Source of the DNA: Hypanus sabinus
Taxonomy: Eukaryota
Length of the DNA: 64,000 nt
Reading direction: 5' to 3'
Assembly: GCF_030144855.1 (NCBI RefSeq)
Contig: NC_082735.1
Span: 25,544,001-25,608,000 of the forward strand
Part shown: piece after piece, positions 7,840 through 62,318 of the stretch
How positions within the stretch are numbered: the first letter of the stretch is position 1
Layout of the letters: each line of letters begins with the position of its first letter
Position numbers and translations under genes: made by a program
Notes under the pieces: generated by a model
The model's database searches: none
What the model was told of the DNA's origin: nothing
The model's input: the letters and a program-made list of their open reading frames with translations, nothing else

Positions 7840-8746
7840 TGTTACGAATGAGGAGCAACTCTGATGGGCAGAAGGGTGCGAAGTCGCCCCCCCCCTTTTG
7901 AGAATCACAAAATCGCTACTATTTCGGGTCTGATACCAAGGAAATGAGAGAGATAACAGCAAAAGATAGTTGTTATTGATAAACAGCTCATGTCAGTTAA
8001 TGAGAGAGAGACAATGCAGAGATACACAAAGTGGAATGTCTCCTCCTACAAAAGTGGAACGGAACCACTGGTTACTGCTATTGTCTCTTGGAGAAGGATT
8101 GTGTATTGAGTACTGTTCTATTCATTGAAACCCCTCAGGGGGCAACCAGAGGGGGCGGGTTTGATGGGTTGCATCATCCCAACCTGATTGACACCTGAGA
8201 CCCCGTGAGTGGGGATAAAAGTAAAGTCTGGGGAACACCCCTCAGATGCACCAGGAGAGATGCTACGAGACCGGTGGGGGCTTGTGTGTGTGTCCACCCT
8301 TGCCTGGGTGATGAGTCCTTCATGGAATGGCCTAGCTAAAGGGCGGAGGGGTCATATGTGAATGGCCACAACAACAATAATCACTGGATCAAGATCATAA
8401 AGGAAAGTCGGCAAGTCAATAGCTGTTACTCTCTCTCCAACAATTGCAACACAGTGACCAACAACTATCGCAGCCTGCATGAACTGAACTGAACTGAACT
8501 GAACTTTGTATTTCCATCGGACAATTCATTATCCCCTATACAACAATAGAGCTTATTTCTTATTGATTATTATTATTATACCCGCACTTTTAGGTTTAGT
8601 ATTGATGACGTATATTATCTGTATATTTGCATTGATATTATTTTTGTGTATTTTTACTAATAAATACTGTTGAAAATAGTATCACCAGACTCCAAAGGAT
8701 ACTCCTATCTTTGCTGGTAAGACACCCAGTTACTGGGTTCATAACA
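7840..8746 (+). mobile_element. Solo LTR (907 bp) inserted in the RTE 3' end
   Basis: TGTTACG...CATAACA termini, 4-bp TSD TTAG, AATAAA near the 3' end; homologous to 9152-9917. Confidence 0.88.
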
Positions 8747-24993: not shown

Positions 24994-25184
24994 NNNNNNN
25001 NNNNNNNNNNNNNNNNNNNNNNNNNNNNNNNNNNNNNNNNNNNNNNNNNNNNNNNNNNNNNNNNNNNNNNNNNNNNNNNNNNNNNNNNNNNNNNNNNNNN
25101 NNNNNNNNNNNNNNNNNNNNNNNNNNNNNNNNNNNNNNNNNNNNNNNNNNNNNNNNNNNNNNNNNNNNNNNNNNNNNNNNNNNN
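24994..25184. other. Assembly gap (N run)
   Basis: Run of N. Confidence 1.
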
Positions 25185-32900: not shown

Positions 32901-35900
32901 CTGACTTTAGTATTATTGTGCCTCCTCCAAAGTGTCCTTATTCCCTAAATAATACATTGAAACAACTATCTACATAGCATTTCCATTGTATTAGGTATTA
33001 TAAGTAATCTAGAGATGACTAAAAGTATTACTCATTGTTCGAGCATTGCTTGCCTCGCGTCTCGTTCATTCGGTACTTGTGTTGTGAGCGAGAGGAAGGA
33101 GTTTAAGGCTAGTAAGGGATGGCTGGCTAGCTACGTAAAGCGCTACAGCCTCAAGAACAAAGATCACAGGAGAATCGGGATCAGCTGATGCCGAGACAGC
33201 ATCAGCATTCCCAGAAGAGCTACAAAGGTTGCGTTTGTACTGAACATGAACAGACTTTTTTTTGTCATTATTCTCNNNNNNNNNNNNNNNNNNNNNNNNN
33301 NNNNNNNNNNNNNNNNNNNNNNNNNNNNNNNNNNNNNNNNNNNNNNNNNNNNNNNNNNNNNNNNNNNNNNNNNNNNNNNNNNNNNNNNNNNNNNNNNNNN
33401 NNNNNNNNNNNNNNNNNNNNNNNNNNGGGGGTGTCCCGGAACCAATTCCCTGTGGATAAGGAGGGCTGACTGTACCTCTTTTTTGGCACTATTTAATTAC
33501 TTTTTATGAATACTGATTATAATTTATAGCTTTTTTATTATGCCGCAAAACATCAAAATGCACGACATATGTCAACGATATCGAACCCAATTCTGATTCA
33601 GTACCAAAGGGTTAATACAGAATCAGAGGACAAGAGACAAAGCATTCACCGTGGACTCAGAAGGACATGGAACACAGATAAAAGAAAAATGGTAGTGACA
33701 AAGAAACAAACAGGAAAGAAGCAAACATCAATGAATTGAACAAGAAGAGGAAATGGTTAGCTGAGGAAAGTGGAGTATAAAACTCATTTCTGTCACACTC
33801 AGTCTTGGGAAAACCTGAAGAACGCGTGCACAGTTCTCAGCTCAATGAATACCAGTGTAAAAGCAAAACCAGCGATGGAATTTCATGATCAATTTGTACA
33901 TCAGGACCGACCAGAATCGTTGGGACGCAGATATAACAGGCTTAGTGAAGGCCAGAAGAAACAACAAATCTGAAAAGCTCACGGTGGTGTTCGGCAAAGC
34001 CTTTGGTGAATCCAGCTTCAGAGTATTGTCGGTGGGCCACTTTGTGAATACTGCATAAACTGAAGATCCCTTACTGGTGTACCTGGAAGGAAAAGCACAG
34101 TGTAAAAGTGAGCACCTCATTAAAAGCAGAGCTTTGCAAAAGGTGACTGAAGCATAAACATCATCTGAATAGTCTTATATTTACTGTCAGCAGCTGTTTA
34201 ACTGTTTGATGGGGAAGGGGGAATTTCATTGAAACTTATCAAATGTTGAAAGGCCTCAATAAGGTAGTTGAAGAGGATGTTTCCAGTGGAGTTTAGGACC
34301 AGAGGACGCAGCCTCAGAATAGAGGGATGTCCATTTAGAACAGGCACAACAACAAATTTCTTTAGCCAATGGGTGGTGAATCTGTGGAATTTGTTACCAC
34401 AGGCGGCTGTGGAGGCCAAGTCATAGAGTATATTTAAGGCAGAGGTTGATAAAATTCTTAATTACTTGGGGCATGAAGGGATATGGGGAGAAGGCAGGAG
34501 AATGGGGGCTGAGAGGGAAAAGGGATCAGCCAAGATGAAATGGTGGAGAAGACGTGATGGGCCAGATGGTCTAGCTCTGACTCTTTATCTTCTGGTCAAG
34601 TGGGCACATGGTCCAGTTCAGGAGAATAACCTGGTTCAGATCTCTATACTCTAAGCAATTCTAAGACTGAGTAATCAGTCCATATGGAACTATCTAAAGA
34701 AATCAAAGTAAACATTGAATGTTAAATTGATTCCCTCCACCCTCCACCCCCCACCTATAGTCACAGGCCTGGAACATAAGACCATAAGACATAGGAGCAG
34801 AATTAGGCCATTCAGCCCATCAAGTCTGCTCTGCTATTTCATCATGATCCCATTCAACCCCATACACCTGCACTCTCACTGTATCCCATGATGCTTCAAC
34901 CCATCAGGAATCTAACAACTTCCACTTTGAACATACCCACGGATTTGGCTTCCACCGCAGTCTGCAGCAGAACATTCCACAGATACACTACTCATTGGCT
35001 AAAAAAAAGTCCTCCTTATTTCTGTTCTAAAAGATCACCCCTCAATTTTGAGGCTGTGCCCTCTAGTTCTCTAGGAAACATCCTCTCCACATCCACCTTA
35101 TTTAGTCCTTTCAATATTCAGCAGGTTTGAATAAGTTTCCAACCCCACACCCCCCCGCATTCCTTTAAATTCCAGTGAGTACAGGCCCAAAGCTGCCAAA
35201 CGCTCCTCATATGTTAACCCCTTCATTCCCAAAAGCATCCTCATGAACCTCCTCTGGACTCTCTCCAATGATAACACATCCCTTCTGAGATCAGGGGCCC
35301 AAAACTGTTGACAATACTCCAAGTGCAGCCTGACATCGACTGCTTCCTCCTTCCACAGATACAGCTTGATCGGCTGAGTTTTACCACAATTCTCTGCTTT
35401 TTTGAAGTTTTACAATGATTTCGTTAATCTCTGCTGGGTTCAGATTTCTCTGTATCAATCAACACACCTTTTTTTTTTGCTGGTGGGGGGGGGGGAGGAT
35501 TGTTGCTTGGCTGCTGCTAATGTGGGGGAGGGAGGGAAGCTGGGGGGGGCTTTGGGGTTCTAACATTTAACTGTCATCCATTCTTTGGGGCACTCCTCTG
35601 TTTTTGTGGCTGGTTGTGAAGAAAAAACATTTCAGGATGTATATTACATACATTTCTCTGATACTAAATGTACCTTTGAAACCATTATTGAATATTGATA
35701 TCTTTCCACACGTTTCTAACAATGACATAGTCTCCTGCAATATACAAAAGCTGGCTTATACAAAGATACGTTCTAAAACTAACCAAGACAATAAAACAGA
35801 GCTCCATGGCATCGCATCACTTTGATGGTTAACAGCAGCACACTGGTGATGAACTGAAGAATAAAATACCTTGACATTTTCTCTGCTCTGACAGTAATCT

Positions 35901-38900
35901 GTGGGTCTTTAAGTGTTCAGTCTGCAGACCTGAAGCAGATTTTATAATTAACGCTTACCCCTATAGTCACTGAGAAAAGATGAACAAGCACCAGCACACG
36001 ATTTGCTGCTACGCACACACACACACACAACGACAAGGATGAAAGGCTACCTGCATGTGCTCTTGGTGCCGCCAGTGACCAATGTACAGAGCGTGAAACA
36101 TTACAAGAACAACGTCCCGCGATTCACGTTAAACCCCTACGACAATGAATTTCACGACATTGGCACCTCCAGTCAATTAGAGATGCTGCTTTAGAGGTTT
36201 TCTTTTAAAAACTTGCGGCTTTTACACTTTAGTCGCTGAAGACCTTTATTTTTGTGCAAGTTCGCCAAGGCTAAACCTCGCCTTATTTAGTGAACCCTTT
36301 TACTGCACAGAAACAACATCCTCGCCTCTGCACAGTCAACATCCCTTACTCTACTAATAATGTCTCCCTTCAACAATTATACACCTCTTCTTTAGAACAC
36401 TCGGCCTATCACCTAACATGTCAACTTTCCTTTCTGCCTTCTGTATGATATATACTCTGTGCATGGCCTCTGTACATGACCTTATAGGCATCCGTTAGTT
36501 TCGAGAGACCACGGATTTGCGTCTTGGAAAGTTTCCGGGGTGCAGGCCTGGGCAGGGTTGTATGGGAGACTGGCAGTTGCAGCCCCTCTCCACACCACCG
36601 ACGTTGTCCAAGGGAAGGGCATTAGGACCCATACGGCTTGGCACCGGTGTCGTCACAGAGCAATGTGTGGTTGAGTGCCTTGCTCAAGGACACAACACAC
36701 TGCCCTAGCTGATGCTCAAACTAGCTACCTTCCAATCACTAGACCAATGCCTTAGCCACTTGGACACACGCCAACATGTACATGACCAGAGTTGATGAAA
36801 AGCACATTACTTCAAATTTTCTAACTTATTACAAGACTGCAGGAGGCCATACAGTCCATTCAGCTCCATGCTGGCTCCCAGCAATCTCATCAGTTCCATT
36901 CTGCCTTTCCTGTATTCCCTGTAGCTTACAGCTTGTTCTCTCTCATTTGCCCATTGACACTCCTTTAATTTTTTAGCTATTTACCTACACTACGTGGGAA
37001 GGAAGTTAGATTGATCTTAGAGTAGGTTAATAGGTTGGCACAGCACCTTGGACCGAAGGATCTGTACTTTGCTGTTATGTTTGATGCGTATTATGGGTAA
37101 AAATAAACAACAGAACTACCAACTACTTCTCCAGCCCTTTACAAGCAAAGACATAATGTTGAGGCTTTATAAAACCACGTTGACACCTCACTTGGAGTAT
37201 TGTGAGCAGTTTGAGGCCCCTTATCTAAGAAAGGAAGCGCTGACATTGGAGAGGGTTGGAAGGAAGTTCACAAAAATGACTCCGGGATTGAAAGGCCTAT
37301 CATATGAGGAGGGTCTGATGGCTCTTTGCCTCTACTCAGAGGAATTCAGGAGAATGAGGGGTGACCTCATGGAAACCTATTGAATATTGAAAGGCCCCGA
37401 TAAGTTGGATGTGGAGAGGATGTTGCCTATTGTGTGTCTGGGGGGGTGTTTAAGACCAGGGGACACAGCCTCAGAATAGAGGAACGTTCTTTTAGAGTGG
37501 AGATGAGGAGGAATTTCTGTAGCCATAGAGCGGTGCATCTGTGGAATTCGTTGCCAGAGGCAGCTGTGGAGGCCAAGTCATTGGGTATATTTAAGGCAGA
37601 AGTTGATAGATTCTTGATTAGTCAGGGCATGGAGGGATACGGGGAGAAGGCCAGAGATTGGGGCTGAGAGGGAAAATGGATCAGACATGATGAAATGGCG
37701 GAGCAGACTCGATGAGCCAAACTGCCTAATCCTGCTGCTATTTGTTATGGGTCTTCACCTTTTTCACCCATCACTCCCGTTTCTTTCTTTCTCTCCCACC
37801 CATCTATCACCTTCACTCCTTCACCTCCCCACCCTCACCTTCTTATTCTGGTTCCTTCCCCCCTTCCTTCCCCGTCCTGGTGAAATGTCTTAACCCAGAA
37901 CATCGACGGCCTGACTTGCTGAGTTCCTCCAGCATTTTGTGTGTGTTGAACAAAACTACCAACACAGCGCTGGGGTGTTGGAGAAAAAGACTGGACTCTG
38001 GTAGAATGTCCAGGCACTGCCCGAAATCACTATTGATTCAATATCCTTGGAGGTATTAATTTATATTTCTTAACATACAGCCCGGAGTAGGCCCTTCTGG
38101 TCCTTCGAGCTGTGCCTCCCAGCAATCCCCCAATTTAATTCTATCCTAATCACAGGACAATTTACAATGACCAATTAACCCTCCAACCGGTACACCTTTG
38201 GACTGTGGGAAGAAACCGGAGCACCCGGAGGAAACCCACGCGGTCATCGGGAGAACGTACAAACTCCTTGCAGGTAGCAGCGGGAATTGAACCGGGGTCG
38301 CCGGTACTGCAAAGCGTTGCGCTACCCACTACGCTACCTCTGCTTGCGCCGCTGCTGAACCTGAAGCTGGGAATAAAGAATGGTGCCACAGATGAGGAGA
38401 ACCAGAACAGGCACACTGCATTTAATCCCGATGGACGTTACCATATTATGTTGGAGCCGTTCTCCTTCTGAACTCGCCAGGGTGTCGATGCGTATATCGC
38501 TTCACCGTTAACACGCAGCCACTGTCCCAGTCCACGCAACCTTTCCTCGAAGATGGGGGAGATGGTGCCATCTTTGGTTGGGCCAATATTGAGCAGGAAG
38601 TTGCCACCATAGACAATCGTGTCCAGTAAACTCTGCCAGGAAGAAGGGAGTTATTGCCATTGTCTGCAATATCCACAGTTCCAATCTCAATTTGTTTTTG
38701 CACAACACCACCCTAAGGAGCCTCACTGACCCCACCACCCCCATTTGCTAAGTAAACAGCAAGAGCATCTGACTAATTTTAAGTGTGAAAAATACTTAGC
38801 AAAATGTTTCAGATGATTTGCAAAACATATATGCATTTATGTAGCTGTTTTGAGGAAGCAGGTTCATGGGTTTGGTTAAGTGAGACAGAAGACACTGATT

Positions 38901-41900
38901 ATGAAAAAACACATTCACCATTTACAAACAGTAAAACATTTGACCGAACACCCAAGTCACCCTATCCTACAGAAACTACAACACTAAACATTCAGTGAGA
39001 CTTCAAACTCAACAGGTACCTCATTAAGTCTCCCCAAGTTCACAATTACAAAACTAAGCCCTCAACGAACAGAGACTTAGCTAAGAATGGACGCTCCTAC
39101 TTCTCTGCAGCACACTTTCCCAACAGAACTCGCAACACTGATCACAACCTCAGTGTGAAGATGAGCCCCTGGAGACAAAGGAAAACAAGTGAGTCTCTCG
39201 CTCATGCTAATCTCTTGCCCCAGGGTGCCCGGAATTACGTACCGATGCCTTGGCACACAGGACAACCAATGGGAAAGAGCTGCTGCATCCCTTGAACTGG
39301 TCAATCAACGGCCAACATGGTGGAAGCAGTTTCTGAGTGACATGTAAAACTAACCCTTCGCATTAGGCAAAGCAACCTTTGGCACTTCTGGCAGAACTGA
39401 TTCCACACAAACCACAAACTTAAGTGTACAGGGCCGGACTAAAGACATTTTACAGCACCCTAATTAAATTCAAATATTCATGGCTATTCACCAGCAGGTT
39501 TCCAACATCGCTGCTCTTGCTGGAATGATTGGATGCACCCTGGCCAAAGTCAGTGTCATAAATGTCAATCATAATGTCCACTAACAGACTGAGAAACAAA
39601 TAATAAACTATCTGATCTAACTTTAGCAGGGGTTCCCAGCTCTTTTTTTTATGCAATGGACCCCTACTGTTAACTGAGGGGTCTGTGGACCCCAGGCTGG
39701 GAACCGCTGAACTATCGGGAGACTGTCAGAGAAGGGCTTTTTTTTTTAAGCACTATGCGTGCCTGGAACTAATTGGGATTTTTAATTTTATTCTGATAGG
39801 TACAAACCAGCTATCTGATCAGATCAATCAGACCAGATATAATCTGGTGGGATGCGTTGAATGCTCTGGCAAGGGCGGAGGCGGAAGCAGGAATGTTAGG
39901 GAGATTTAAGAGAGACTCCTAGATAAGCACATGGATAAAATTAAATGGAGGGCTATGGGAAAGTGATCTTGGACTGGGTAGAAAGGTCAGCACAGCATCA
40001 AGGACTGAAGGGCTTGCACAGTGTTGTGATTTGGGTGGCTTAGTTTCCCATAGGTCAAATCCCTTGGTCATCCCAGGAGACCACCACAACTTTGCCCGAA
40101 TTCATTCTCATTCTACTGGAGTGCAGTAATGGTGAACCGGCAGCACATACAGTGATAATGGATGGTAGATCTTCCACGTCCTTCGACTGCATTTTTCTGC
40201 GGTATCCCCAGGACCATCTGTCAAGTGTGGTGCACTTCTCCCACTTGTGGTTCTGCAGTTTGCTGGGGCTGTATTTGTCTGCACAGTTGAAGAAGCCGCC
40301 GTGTTTACAAGAACAGCCAGCTCCCCAGCGGTCATTAGTGACCACAGTATCCTAGTGACAAATTTGGAAAAAAAGACTTTTCTTAATTTCAGCATTTTTT
40401 TGAAGTGGGTAAATAGAACAAACGTGCCAGCCGGTTTTCACAAAGGAAGGACTCAATACAACAAAGAAATAAAGTGAGGCAGAGCGAAGGACTTTATACG
40501 TACAGAATAGAGATTATCTTTTTTGTTTTACAAGCAGTATTGATAAGCAGGAGGCCAGAATGATTTCAATAAATTCCCTCCGCATTCCAGAAAATGTGGC
40601 ACAACTGTATCCCTATTTTTATATTGAGATACAGCATGGAGCCAAGCCTTGCAAAAATCCCCAACTACTACTCCAGCCCTTTACCTTTTCCACCTACCAC
40701 CAATTAATCTACCAACTTAGTCTTTGGACTGTGGGAGGAAACCAGAGCACCTGGAGGAAACCCACACAGGGAAATACAATTCCATGCTATAACAAAATTG
40801 GCGCAAGTCTATATGCTCAGGGCACTTGGAGGTGCAAATAAAATTAATGCTAAAGAAATGAAGAACCGTTAGAATGAAAAGGAAACAAAAAAAGAAAGTG
40901 CTCACTCGAAGAGCACTTACACATTCACATTAGTGGAGGTGTAAAAGGAATTAGTTGTATTGAAGTAAGAAGTGTGCATGAAAAATTATTTTAATGAGGC
41001 AGTTCCGTCAATTTAAAACATGCTTTTAAAAAACTTGAACAGTTTAGATAGAGTTGGTAAAGAGTTAAGTACCCCATCGCCCACTACAGTTGTAAAGAGC
41101 AGAGCATTTCTTGTGTCTGCAGTTTGTAATGAGCCAAAGTGTGTAAACCAGGGATTCCCAACCTTCTTTCTGCCATGGACATACACCATTCAGCAAGGGG
41201 TCCGTGGACCCCAGGCTGGGAATCCCTGATAAACAAAGTGAAGTTGCACATGCTCTGGAAGACCCAAAGTGAGCAAACAATGTGAAGTTGTCACAGCCTT
41301 GGGGACGATGACTGTGGAGCCTTATTTGACCTACATAATCTCCCAAATGCAGGATACCCACACTGTTGAATTCTTCACGATACAGGGGAAAAGACAGCTG
41401 ATCGACTGTGTGTGAGGGAGGGGAAATTATTTAATTGTTTAATAACACCAGTCCATTGCAGATCCAATACCTTTAAAGGACATTTTGCTGAATACAGAAA
41501 CAAAAGTAAAAGCTTGGATGAATATGCCTGATCCTAAATGGGCTAAGGAGGAAACCAAAACTGAGATAACAATTGTCATTGCTAATCTAAATACTCTCTC
41601 AATGTTATGAATACTGTTAAAACGTACTTTGACAGGGCTGTCATTGTAGAGCCAAGCCAGAAATCCAGTGGAATTCCAGTAAGTATCTGGTGCTTCCCAG
41701 TCACCATCTGACCAGATTATATCTGGTTTGTATCTGTCAGAATAAAAGAGAAAACAAGCAACATTAGTTCTAGGAAATCAGGCATAAAATCCATCCTTAT
41801 TTTCCTAGAACTAACAGTCTCTTTTCTTAAAATAGCTGAATCAGACTAATAGTTTTGGAATTCAACTATGGAAATCACGGGCATGGTTGGATTGAGTTCT

Positions 41901-59634: not shown

Positions 59635-62318
59635 CTGGAAAAAGTTCAAAAAACACAAAGACATGAATGAAACAAAAACGGAAGGCACAATACTGTTACT
59701 AACTGAAATAGAACTTAATGCTCTTGATTAAAAAGCAAAGTGCTGGAGGAACTCAGTGGGCCAGGCAGCATCCGCAGAGGGAAATGGACTGTTGACATTT
59801 TGGGTCACGATCTTTCATCTAGGTCATTGCTCTTGATAATTGCAGAGCTAATAAGACAAGTTATCAATGTTGAGAAGGAGAATAAAATGATGAATTCAAT
59901 AACAAGATTAACACAAAGCCATTTAACATGCAAGCAAAAAGCACCAACTAACAAAATCAAGACTCATTAGTAATGCAAGTTCACCCACACTTCATAGAAT
60001 CATAGAAAAGTTCAGCACAGAAACTGTGGTATGTCAGAATGTTTCACGGTTTACAATGTACAGTATATAGAAACACAACTGTGACTGACACACAATGGCA
60101 GAAACTTCAGGGTGGAGGAAAGGTGGAACTTCTATAGTTTTAGATTTTTTTTGTCATATATTGCCATTAAATCAATGGATGTTAACATTAGATCAGGGTA
60201 CGCAACTTTCCTCTTAATTTATCAGTAACAAGGAAGAAACCGCAAAAATAGATAAGGCATGCCAAGAGTTCCAGATTAATATTTGATGTTACCCAAGTGA
60301 CAATGCCAGTGTGTACCAGCTGATGTTCCTGCCAGGTGCACCATATTATTCACGTTATTTTTCAACAATTTGTTCAAGATTAGGATAAGCACAAGGTTGA
60401 GCTCCCATGTCTACTGCCAAGATAATTGTTAACTTAAGTAAACATCGAGACTTCACACTCACAGTCATGTGGTGACTGCGGAGGTGCTCAAGTCGTGTGA
60501 ATCTCTTCCCACAGGAACCACAAGGAAATGGTCTCTCCCCTGTATGTGATCGAAGATGTCGCTTCAAGTCAGATTTCCGCTTCACTGTATGTGTACAGAA
60601 AGGGCACTTGAATCTCATCTTTGGTAATATATTGCAGTCTCCTTTGGAAAAAAAAATGTAGATGTTTAAACAAAATGTAAAATATTTGGAATTCTAAATC
60701 TGCACATATCCAGGTGAGACAATGCAATACACTTGTGAATTATGACTACAGAACATTCGTAATAGATTTTAAGCAGTTGAAAATCTAGGGAAGCTTAAGA
60801 CCTGACGAGGAAACCATTATTCTTGTCAAAATGTATCAAAGTATGTAGCAACTTAACTGTTTTCCTTTCTGTACAATTCCTCCTTAAAGCTTAATATTGG
60901 GCAAGTGCTTATATTTCCTGTCTCCTCACTTCCTGATCCATCCTCATTTTATATTATTCCTCTCCTTGCTGTGTCTAATTTCTACAGGGCTGAGTGAGTT
61001 GCTAGCTCGACACTCAACCCAGCACAGACTGAAAGCATGCAAGGAGCTGGCCGGATTCGAACCACTCACCTCAAAGTCTGGTGCTGATGCCACTTCACCA
61101 CAGGCCAGCTCTTAAAGCTATTTATTTGATTAAATAACACTTCTGTAAAAGCCATGAAATCTAATTGTGTGTTAATTTGTGTTTTACATGCTATACAAAT
61201 AGAAACAGTTGCAGCTGTAAACAAAAATCAATTGTAATGGACAACAGTGTCTTTCAAACAAATGGCTATGTACAACCAGACATGAATGCATTTCAATTGT
61301 TTTAATGCCTCAGGTTAGTAAAGCAACAGATTAAAAAATTTACAGTAAGGTAATGAGATACCCAGATGGTATCCCAATGGTTTGCCTCCACCTTTGGCAT
61401 TAAAGAAAGCTTACCTGTGCTCTCTCCATTCCAGTCACCTACAACTTCCACAATTGTAGGCACTGGAGGATACCAATCTTCTGCCTTTCGATCTCTCCCT
61501 TGAGAAGGTTGCTGGACTGTGTCAGTGTTCCTTTGTGGCAGAGACAGCCCATCTGCCTGATGCCTGAAGTGATAATTCACAAGCGGGCCAATTGGCTCAG
61601 AACCCACTATTCTCTTCTCATGATCCTGGGGTTCTGTGTTTATGTGTTCAGACGTTCTTGCACCCAAACTGCACAAGCCATTGCCTTTGTGAACAGCAAC
61701 TTCCTGGGGCGTTTTGTCATTGGCAAAAGGCATCGGCAATTGGTCTCTGGGGCAGGGGAGGTTTGAAGCTGCCTGATGAAAGTTGAAATTTCTCCAGGAA
61801 TGTCCAACAGTACCTCCCAAATCAGAGTTCTTCTGAGTGTGACCAGAGTTCATCTCTAGACCACGGCTGCCTGAATACAAGGGTGGTGCTTCCCCACATT
61901 TCATTTCACTATTACTGGAATGTCTTAAGTATCTCTCTTTTTCACTTATGTCTAGGGATGATTTGATGAAGCTCTTGCAGACATTAATCACATCTGTCAT
62001 TTGCAGGAAGCTGGCAGCTGACATCACATCGATCACGTTTTGGCTTGTGAGGGACAGCCGCCCTGAGTAGATGAAATCCAAAATAATTGTAAATGCATCT
62101 GCAGAGAAGACGTCGAATGTGGCTACGGCGGGCTGCCCCACATCCTGGGCGTTATGAAGCAGCAGCATACGGAAGTACCCACTGCTGGCAAACAGGATGT
62201 TACGGTGACCCTTAAAGACTCTGCCCTCCACAATTATGCTGCAGTCACAAAACATTTCCTGCTTACGCTGCTCGTTTAGCTGTTGGAATAAATGGGCTTG
62301 GTGTGAGGAGATCTCCAT
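59305..62318 (-). CDS. ZBTB8A: Zinc finger and BTB domain-containing protein 8A; whole coding span, 3 exons, 470 aa
   Basis: Exons 62318-61415 (904 nt), 60641-60463 (179 nt) and 59634-59305 (330 nt) = 1413 nt, in phase. The N-terminus [25 protein letters not shown] is characteristic of ZBTB8A. Confidence 0.93.
60463..60641 (-). CDS. ZBTB8A: ZBTB8A C2H2 zinc-finger exon
   Basis: [50 protein letters not shown]; ccaaag| acceptor, |GTGAGT donor. Confidence 0.95.
60985..61110 (-). mobile_element. Short tRNA-derived SINE in a ZBTB8A intron
   Basis: Minus strand TGGTGAAGTGGCATCAGC..GGTTCGAATCCGGCC (A/B boxes). Confidence 0.55.
61415..62318 (-). CDS. ZBTB8A: ZBTB8A BTB-domain exon (acceptor at 62354, ATG at 62318)
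   Basis: BTB motifs [30 protein letters not shown]; donor G|GTAAGC. Confidence 0.94.

Follow-up and report, generated by a model that had tools for sequence, protein, structure and literature searches.

What question is raised by an intron that carries, on the opposite strand, a likeness of one of its own gene's splice acceptors: does the pairing that this allows regulate splicing, or does it record an old accident? Such a box lies in intron 5 of the stingray FUCA1 gene, whose loss causes fucosidosis in humans. In the window, the 64-kb stretch of DNA analysed here, the FUCA1 reading frame is open in 8/8 exons, with 82-97% identity to the sawfish Pristis across most of them. The acceptor concerned is that of exon 4 (41628-41733, - strand), which, as the original prediction held, encodes the catalytic nucleophile; its alignment to human FucA1 (7pls_A 192-226) takes in the WSDG aspartate, nucleophile Asp225. 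Exon 5 (40151-40351, - strand; phase 0-0) lies between the box and its source. The two exons had been given as 106 and 307 nt, both frameshifting if skipped, and this is correct for the 106 nt of exon 4, but exon 5 measures 201 nt and alone would not shift the frame, 307 nt being the length of exons 4 and 5 together.

Judged by alignment, 39745-39854 on the + strand, with a secure core at 39754-39854, repeats the FUCA1 intron-3/exon-4 junction (41786-41705, - strand) in inverted and diverged form. The source arm (41705-41786, -) is the working 3' splice site region, with its AG at 41735-41734 and exon positions +1 to +28, and the copy reproduces the pyrimidine tract and AG of the intron-3 3' end and the first ~22-28 nt of exon 4. 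When exon 4 with 100 nt on either side was compared with both strands of the 64-kb window (blastn), the copy was matched at E values of 1.6e-6 and 8e-4, and no further match had E < 0.4. An even closer match is that between the copy and the acceptor of Pristis, with 80% identity over 86 nt, an E of 6e-16 and a local score of 117 against a shuffle maximum of 51. A repeat search resolved two inverted pairs, 39779-39814/41719-41754 (36 nt, 83%) and 39829-39854/41705-41730 (26 nt, 88%), whose arms are separated by 1850-1904 nt. The exon part is doubled inside the copy (39801-39824 and 39829-39854), which also contains a perfect 12-nt palindrome (39813-39824). These observations bear out most of what had been described at the outset, namely arms ~1.9 kb apart, an exon part present twice, a 23/25 block over pyrimidine tract, AG and exon start, a 17/17 block (here 39832-39848), and a duplication that should stand out from shuffled sequence; the first block, reported as 11/12, is present with a count of 10/11. 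Among the 8 FUCA1 exons checked, an inverted copy of this type was found for exon 4 only. The stretch leftward to ~39717 is collinear as well (GAGACTGTCAG), yet neither this stretch nor a longer one that reaches 39605 through the neighbouring repeat scored better than shuffles, and neither is counted as part of the copy.

Could the resemblance be fortuitous, or produced by the assembly? The matching stretch is short (~100 nt), AT-rich and partly palindromic, and hence aligns in both orientations. However, the E values within the window and against Pristis, together with a score reached by no shuffle, speak against chance, and mis-assembled present-day reads could not yield a diverged copy (80-88%) that carries ancestral bases, so that we regard both explanations as effectively refuted.

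Comparison with other cartilaginous fishes sets the copy within a larger insertion. Orthologues were retrieved with a profile of an insect protein and the window's exons from Pristis, Amblyraja (skate), Narcine (electric ray) and Heptranchias (cow shark), Pristis being the nearest relative among them; an exon-5 peptide search for closer relatives gave a best identity of at most 73%, and the two contigs examined held compact, non-orthologous genes. The antisense box of intron 5 is absent from all four species compared, and no inverted copy was found in the FUCA1 gene of Heptranchias. In Pristis, Amblyraja and Narcine the intron continues uninterrupted over 39618|40032, the block being missing at one and the same ancestral point. 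On this comparative evidence the block (39619-40031, +, ~413 bp) is a single lineage-specific insertion at one ancestral point of intron 5, composed of a MITE-like element, ~30 nt, the acceptor copy and a LINE tail.

The LINE tail (39847-40031, +) is the 5'-truncated 3' end of an old element, which may be CR1-like, to judge from its ORF2 C-terminal motif; its ORF remnants gave no match against Pfam. Homology to the LINE family, seen with a profile built without this copy and in multiple and pairwise alignments, extends from 39847-39850 to ~40031, and the exon 17-mer stops at 39848, leaving an overlap of 0-2 nt at the junction. At the other side, the right edge of the block coincides with the natural 3' end of the tail, as aligned to the family's 3' ends. 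Of nine truncated LINE tails in the window, this is the only one with a locally derived 5' flank. The left edge of the block is formed by a palindromic MITE-like element with terminal inverted repeats (39622-39714, no strand assigned), and a second member of its family lies in intron 4 (41149-41229). No clear target-site duplication was found around 39619-40031: a 6-nt candidate, TGATYT, cannot be told apart from the sequence of LINE tails, and a 9-16-nt candidate (AACTATC..., TGATCTGAG) was discarded, AACTA being part of the MITE terminal repeat and TGATTT fitting the LINE tail. Three other accounts of the block were rejected. A MITE copied from the intron-4 member in the same event would have the wrong orientation for a pre-mRNA template and is only 74% identical; a SINE family finds no second head-plus-tail copy in the window and no tRNA or Rfam match; and 5' transduction, trans-splicing or RNA ligation sits poorly with a LINE part comprising only the last ~185 nt and a junction at exon +22 that is no splice site.

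In LINE chimeras, the foreign RNA precedes the 5' end of a truncated LINE and is in sense with it (bioRxiv 10.1101/2025.02.02.635956; PMC2104539). Here, the copied FUCA1 junction lies directly 5' of the 5'-truncated tail, and both are sense on the + strand. We therefore consider, with a probability of roughly 60%, that the acceptor copy was left long ago by a retrotransposon insertion, as a by-product and not as a dedicated regulator. A LINE would have entered FUCA1 intron 5 antisense to the gene, in an ancestor of the stingray lineage after the sawfish lineage had split off. We infer that, on reaching the truncated LINE 5' end, the polymerase jumped to a new template and took from it ~110 nt spanning the intron-3/exon-4 junction; this template would be either unspliced pre-mRNA made at the same locus or DNA 1.9 kb away, and the palindromic exon start (CCAGAT-ATA-ATCTGG) would have been traversed twice. 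Because the fragment is sense to the LINE and the LINE antisense to the gene, the fragment is complementary to the gene's exon-4 acceptor. The earlier statement that the element derives from the gene itself and not from a transposon thus holds for the copy's own sequence, but it overlooks a transposon insertion as the most likely carrier.

Known LINE/host-RNA chimeras (U6/L1, U3/L1, mRNA/L1, and tripartite forms in Magnaporthe) resemble the stingray block in that a foreign piece directly abuts a 5'-truncated LINE at its 5' end and reads in the same direction, the insertion stops at the natural LINE 3' end, and the template is traversed twice or with a jump. Unlike them, the stingray piece comes from the recipient gene itself, whose intron-exon junction it carries unspliced, and is hence complementary to a working splice site; moreover, it comes without a clear target-site duplication and with a non-L1, possibly CR1-like, LINE. 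Because intron was copied along with exon, the sequence gives no proof of an RNA source, and pre-mRNA and DNA templates fit equally well. Further observations count against the LINE-associated origin. For the MITE-like element at the left edge, which may have come in the same event, either the template must have been switched a third time or the spot must have been hit twice. In addition, Narcine has a partial exon-4 copy at a LINE 3' end, on the opposite strand, which a simple template-switch scheme does not predict. In favour of a link with LINEs, this Narcine copy is independent of the stingray one and likewise touches the end of a LINE of the same family; the remainder of exon 4 was looked for beyond the LINE 5' end and not found.

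A possible, though clearly less probable, origin lies in DNA repair, in which a break or stalled fork in intron 5 would have been followed by fold-back or microhomology template switching (SD-MMEJ/MMBIR) that copied ~110 nt of the opposite strand at a distance of 1.9 kb, LINE and MITE being separate neighbours or filler of the same repair. The inverted orientation, short junction microhomologies, palindromic exon start and internal re-copied segment would all suit such a process, as would a perfect 14-bp hairpin in intron 3 (41764-41814, -; arms 41764-41777/41801-41814, 23-nt loop), of the type produced by template-switch mutations, and an 18-nt direct repeat that flanks the intron-4 MITE. Templated inverted insertions at breaks (SD-MMEJ snap-back, fold-back) are documented (PMC11724301; PMC5728401), and they resemble the stingray case in the inversion of nearby sequence, junction microhomology and palindromic context. 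However, the fold-back insertions described in PMC11724301 are mostly 5-34 bp with a template near the break, whereas the stingray piece of ~110 nt is several-fold longer, was taken from 1.85-1.9 kb away, and is fused to a LINE tail with a natural terminus. A natural LINE 3' end exactly at the block edge, with the 5' end against the copy, is what target-primed reverse transcription predicts, and not random filler.

Whichever route produced it, the copy has since diverged from its source. Over ~70 aligned sites in five genomes, changes fall on one side only at 6 sites in the gene's own arm and 5 in the copy, 6 are ambiguous, and 3 derived bases are shared. The copy keeps the ancestral states CTGGAA.TAATTGGGATT and CTGATAGG, which the window's own acceptor has lost; because it holds these together with the 3 derived bases in common with that acceptor, the copying would have taken place in the window's lineage, and long ago. 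Comparison of orthologous introns for compensatory changes, as proposed in the original prediction, found the box absent from the four other cartilaginous fishes and the arms drifting independently, with no sign of maintained pairing: 11 unambiguous one-sided and 6 ambiguous sites stand against the 3 shared-derived ones, which may simply be older than the copy, and the one-sided differences include positions -4 and +1 at the AG. The evolutionary evidence thus favours a scar over an RNA switch, and the element is probably neutral, to judge from these genomes and aligned sites. The alternative offered from the beginning, a neutral scar of a fold-back or template-switch event, gains from a lineage-specific composite insertion with a LINE fragment and from arms that drift independently.

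What, then, of the duplex itself? The physical premise that the arms can pair over the acceptor was upheld in silico. The predicted energy of the arm-arm duplex is -64.3 kcal/mol, with 49 MFE pairs; at a z of -8.2, it ranks first among 423 windows. In a fold of 2.25 kb of pre-mRNA the arms pair with a probability of 0.9-1.0 along the pyrimidine tract, at the AG and in the exon from +2 to +28. At 41771-41777 the probability of any pairing is ~1 and that of pairing with the copy ~0, the local 14-bp hairpin outcompeting long-range pairing of the first block. One may ask, therefore, whether in some transcripts the antisense arm engages the acceptor of exon 4 and has been retained by selection as a switch, through skipping of exon 4 or of exons 4 and 5 with nonsense-mediated decay, a 307-nt circRNA of exons 4-5, or A-to-I editing. 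The element has long persisted, the duplex is the acceptor's most stable predicted partner in the locus and dominates the 2.25-kb ensemble, and double-stranded structure on splice sites is generally obstructive, with looped-out exons less included (PMC8052449). We nevertheless consider such a switch improbable. The element is lineage-specific, arrived within a transposon-associated block and has diverged one-sidedly even at the AG; its distal block is taken by the local hairpin; and complementary regions over active splice sites are depleted in human genes (PMC8052449). In addition, transcription passes the acceptor and exon 4 ~1.9 kb before it reaches the antisense arm, by which point splicing factors have probably occupied them; as the gene has also stayed intact, the duplex would be expected to have little effect in vivo. 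Even so, the duplex as modelled may be strong enough for some effect on splicing.

Circularisation would be a special case. Exons 4-5 lie between inverted repeats of 36 and 26 nt, much as circularising exons lie between inverted Alu pairs, and these repeats exceed the minimal length, 30-40 nt being enough in some cases (Liang and Wilusz, 2014; PMC4201285). Unlike those repeats, however, the stingray upstream arm holds the pyrimidine tract, AG and exon start, and pairing would mask the back-splicing acceptor; because that acceptor itself sits within the predicted duplex, the geometry for a circRNA is poor. Long-range pre-mRNA pairings, including PCCRs (Kalmykova et al., 2021), those of Drosophila and ATE1, and Dscam selector/docking pairs, offer a second comparison. 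As in those, kilobases of a single pre-mRNA separate two complementary boxes, of which one covers a splice site; exons are looped out between them, and the predicted duplex is stable. In contrast, the known pairings are defined by conservation and compensatory change, whereas the stingray pair is lineage-specific with one-sided drift, and its duplex would cover a constitutive, active acceptor, the arrangement depleted in human genes (PMC8052449).

A bolder speculation joins both themes: perhaps the LINE reverse transcriptase caught nascent unspliced pre-mRNA of its target gene and thereby set an antisense lock on an essential acceptor, which in stingrays would now act as a kinetic brake, dependent on elongation speed, on inclusion of the catalytic-Asp exon, by skipping with decay or by editing. 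We consider this very unlikely. If it were true, a transposon insertion would be a one-step route to self-complementary splicing regulators.

The present case is a single old example in one lineage, and probably a neutral one. If the LINE-associated origin that we favour is true, LINE insertions can write a host gene's own unspliced transcript, or nearby DNA, back into the gene in antisense, and a single event would be enough to place a constitutive splice site within a strong intramolecular duplex. Long-range pre-mRNA structures would then have a simple and general source, which would also account for occasional splicing defects, and stingray FUCA1 would serve as a natural experiment on how far an antisense arm that is stable and lies downstream matters under co-transcriptional splicing.

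The original prediction of an inverted copy of the FUCA1 exon-4 splice acceptor within intron 5 is confirmed, as plus-strand positions 39754-39854 mirror minus-strand 41786-41705 and span the intron-3 terminus, pyrimidine tract included, together with the AG and the initial 22-28 nt of exon 4. In a repeat search, two inverted matches emerged, one of 36 nt (83%) and one of 26 nt (88%), with 1850-1904 nt between the arms. When both strands of the whole window were searched, the two blocks of the copy gave E values of 1.6e-6 and 8e-4, with the next match at 0.4; that chance or artefact produced the resemblance is scarcely credible. The exon part is indeed present twice in the copy, about a perfect 12-nt palindrome (39813-39824). 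The start of exon 4 is itself palindromic (CCAGAT-ATA-ATCTGG, then TCAGAT), and parts of the copy therefore align in both orientations. No comparable copy was found for any of the seven other FUCA1 exons.

The host gene is a tissue alpha-L-fucosidase gene (FUCA1-type) on the minus strand of the window, for which eight exons were positioned by use of retrieved fucosidase proteins: exon 1 at 50571-50203, exon 2 at 48136-~48000, exon 3 at 44266-~44130, exon 4 at 41733-41628, exon 5 at 40351-40151, exon 6 at ~38650-38445, exon 7 at 34081-~33980, and exon 8 at 26924-26787. Exon 4 corresponds by alignment to residues 192-226 of human FucA1 (structure 7pls_A), including the WSDG aspartate, which is the catalytic nucleophile of the human enzyme, Asp225 (PMC9548408). 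Exons 4 and 5 had been given as 106 and 307 nt, both frameshifting if skipped; the 106 nt of exon 4 holds, while 307 nt is the length of the two exons combined, and exon 5 (201 nt) would keep the frame if skipped alone. Two N runs lie within FUCA1 introns (24994-25184, 191 nt; 33276-33426, 151 nt). Upstream of the gene is an ORF with a BTB/POZ domain (61305-62318, minus strand; Pfam E 2.8e-27), and a BTB and zinc-finger gene occupies the matching place in Pristis pectinata (L006 1-330), so synteny is conserved.

Comparison across species shows that the copy is not free-standing, but belongs to a composite insertion. In the intron 5 alignment, 39619-40031 (~413 nt) stands out as one block added at a single site of the ancestral intron: position 7887 of the Pristis locus adjoins both 39618 and 40032 of the window, and Amblyraja and Narcine concur. 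From its left edge, the block comprises a palindromic MITE-like element (39622-39714; a second family member lies in intron 4 at 41149-41229), ~30 nt with no assignment, the acceptor copy, and a plus-strand LINE 3' tail fragment that extends from 39847-39850 to the right edge, which is the natural 3' end of the LINE family. This family has at least 15 further copies in the window; it gave no Pfam matches by which its class could be set, and it may be CR1-like, judging by the ORF2 C-terminal motif. Three methods (a profile from which the block's own tail was left out, multiple alignment, and pairwise alignments) place the start of the LINE homology at 39847-39850, and the exon copy's perfect 17-mer finishes at 39848. 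Thus, copy and LINE are fused with an overlap of at most 2 nt, both in sense on the plus strand. Among the window's nine truncated tails from this family, that of the block alone has locally derived sequence at its 5' flank. No convincing target-site duplication was found at the block.

Other insertions also mark this locus. The LINE tail (~590 nt) occurs in at least 16 copies, making up ~11% of the window, and one truncated tail (34216-34596, plus strand) starts ~135 nt away from exon 7. In intron 4, the MITE-like element (41149-41260) is likewise specific to the window's lineage and has on its two sides a direct repeat of 18 nt (41131-41148/41261-41278, 83%), far longer than usual cut-and-paste target-site duplications; a second short repeat lies nearby (41231-41246/41275-41290). 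Relative to Pristis, a further lineage-specific insertion of ~450 nt is found in intron 5 at 38850-39390 (L006 8115-8219 vs window 39397-38846).

An inverted copy of the gene's own acceptor was not found in any of the four orthologous loci compared, those of Pristis pectinata (the closest FUCA1 orthologue found), Amblyraja radiata, Narcine bancroftii, and Heptranchias perlo, in which intron 5 measures 700-900 nt, versus 1500 nt in the window. The copy is closer to the Pristis acceptor (80% over 86 nt, E 6e-16) than to the window's own. In a five-way alignment, it retains the states CTGGAA.TAATTGGGATT and CTGATAG|G, which it shares with Pristis and Narcine; the working acceptor has lost both and now reads CTAGAACTAATGTTGCTTG and CTGACAG|A. 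Three derived bases are common to the copy and the window's own acceptor. These retained and shared states indicate that the copy was taken from FUCA1 itself, in the window's lineage, long ago, once that lineage had diverged from the one leading to sawfish. By parsimony over ~70 ungapped sites, six changes fall on the working arm alone and five on the copy alone, against three shared-derived and six ambiguous; the one-sided changes include acceptor positions -4 and +1. Both arms have drifted, and the proposed comparison of orthologous introns for compensatory changes gave no indication of maintained pairing.

How, then, might the copy have arisen? In LINE chimeras of target-primed reverse transcription, a foreign segment lies in sense directly 5' of a truncated LINE, and the LINE 3' end forms the insertion boundary (bioRxiv 10.1101/2025.02.02.635956; PMC2104539). 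The block has the same anatomy, although the captured piece is, unusually, a splice junction, still unspliced, from the very gene that hosts the insertion. We therefore read the copy as a LINE-associated, essentially neutral by-product (probability roughly 0.6), which gives a more specific form to the neutral scar offered originally as an alternative. A LINE would have inserted in intron 5, and the polymerase, quitting the LINE RNA, would have copied ~110 nt of the intron-3/exon-4 junction, passing the palindromic exon start twice. The template may have been pre-mRNA, not yet spliced, that was being produced at the locus, or equally DNA 1.9 kb off, because the fragment contains intron. Since the LINE runs antisense to the gene, any FUCA1 fragment in sense to the LINE must be antisense to FUCA1. 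For the MITE-like element that forms the left edge, an extra template jump or a second event at that spot would be needed. The main rival, fold-back or template-switch repair at the DNA level only, with unrelated transposons, accords with the palindromes and with a nearby perfect 14-bp hairpin; nevertheless, it gives no reason for a LINE piece ending at its natural terminus, and templated inverted insertions, in the part of the literature consulted, are typically far shorter and more local (PMC11724301); we consider it less likely.

In Narcine bancroftii, too, a fragment of exon 4 touches a LINE end. An independent, direct partial copy of exon 4 (~+14 to +90; 86% over 77 nt) lies in its FUCA1 intron 3 (L008:10808-10893), within 3 nt of where a minus-strand LINE from the same family (11437-10898, envelope to 10887) has its 3' end. 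The left breakpoint of this Narcine copy lies within the palindromic exon start, as does the end of the window's copy, and the geometry is not predicted by the simple template-switch scheme.

The original prediction also put forward a possible RNA switch in which the arms pair and mask the acceptor, and the duplex premise is sound in silico. The predicted arm-arm duplex reaches -64.3 kcal/mol (duplexfold; z = -8.2 vs 300 dinucleotide shuffles), the best of 423 windows tiled over the locus. In a partition-function fold of a 2.25-kb pre-mRNA segment, a long-range helix (P 0.9-1.0) covers the pyrimidine tract (41747-41737), the AG (41735-41734), and exon positions +2 to +28; in the minimum free energy structure, 49 pairs join the arms, arranged as helices of 11, 2, 10, and 12 bp and some weaker, more distal helices. 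The first block of the original prediction (CCTAGAACTAA) is taken instead by a local 14-bp hairpin (41764-41777/41801-41814). This hairpin, a perfect inverted repeat around a 23-nt loop, lies within intron 3, 30-80 nt ahead of the exon-4 AG, where the branch point probably falls, and it rivals the long-range duplex (P ~1 for local pairing); both of its arms differ from the Pristis sequence, and it could be a local template-switch mutation.

Such RNA structures generally obstruct splice sites and lower inclusion of looped-out exons, and complementary regions are depleted over active splice sites (PMC8052449); in addition, circularisation can be driven by inverted repeats 30-40 nt long (PMC4201285). 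Yet the acceptor that back-splicing requires would be buried in the helix, and the polymerase reaches the antisense arm ~1.9 kb past the acceptor, with the exon-4 donor already transcribed. Splicing is established to proceed co-transcriptionally, and exon definition can thus precede pairing. Moreover, the element is lineage-specific, came with a transposon, and decays one-sidedly, and FUCA1 has stayed intact in the window. A selected switch is thus improbable, lacking support from the evolutionary evidence though not refuted experimentally; it is conceivable that the modeled duplex modestly alters splicing efficiency without being under selection, or leads to some editing. The case belongs with LINE chimeras and intronic inverted repeats, both known kinds of element, as a variant that is unusual for its capture of an unspliced junction of the host gene.
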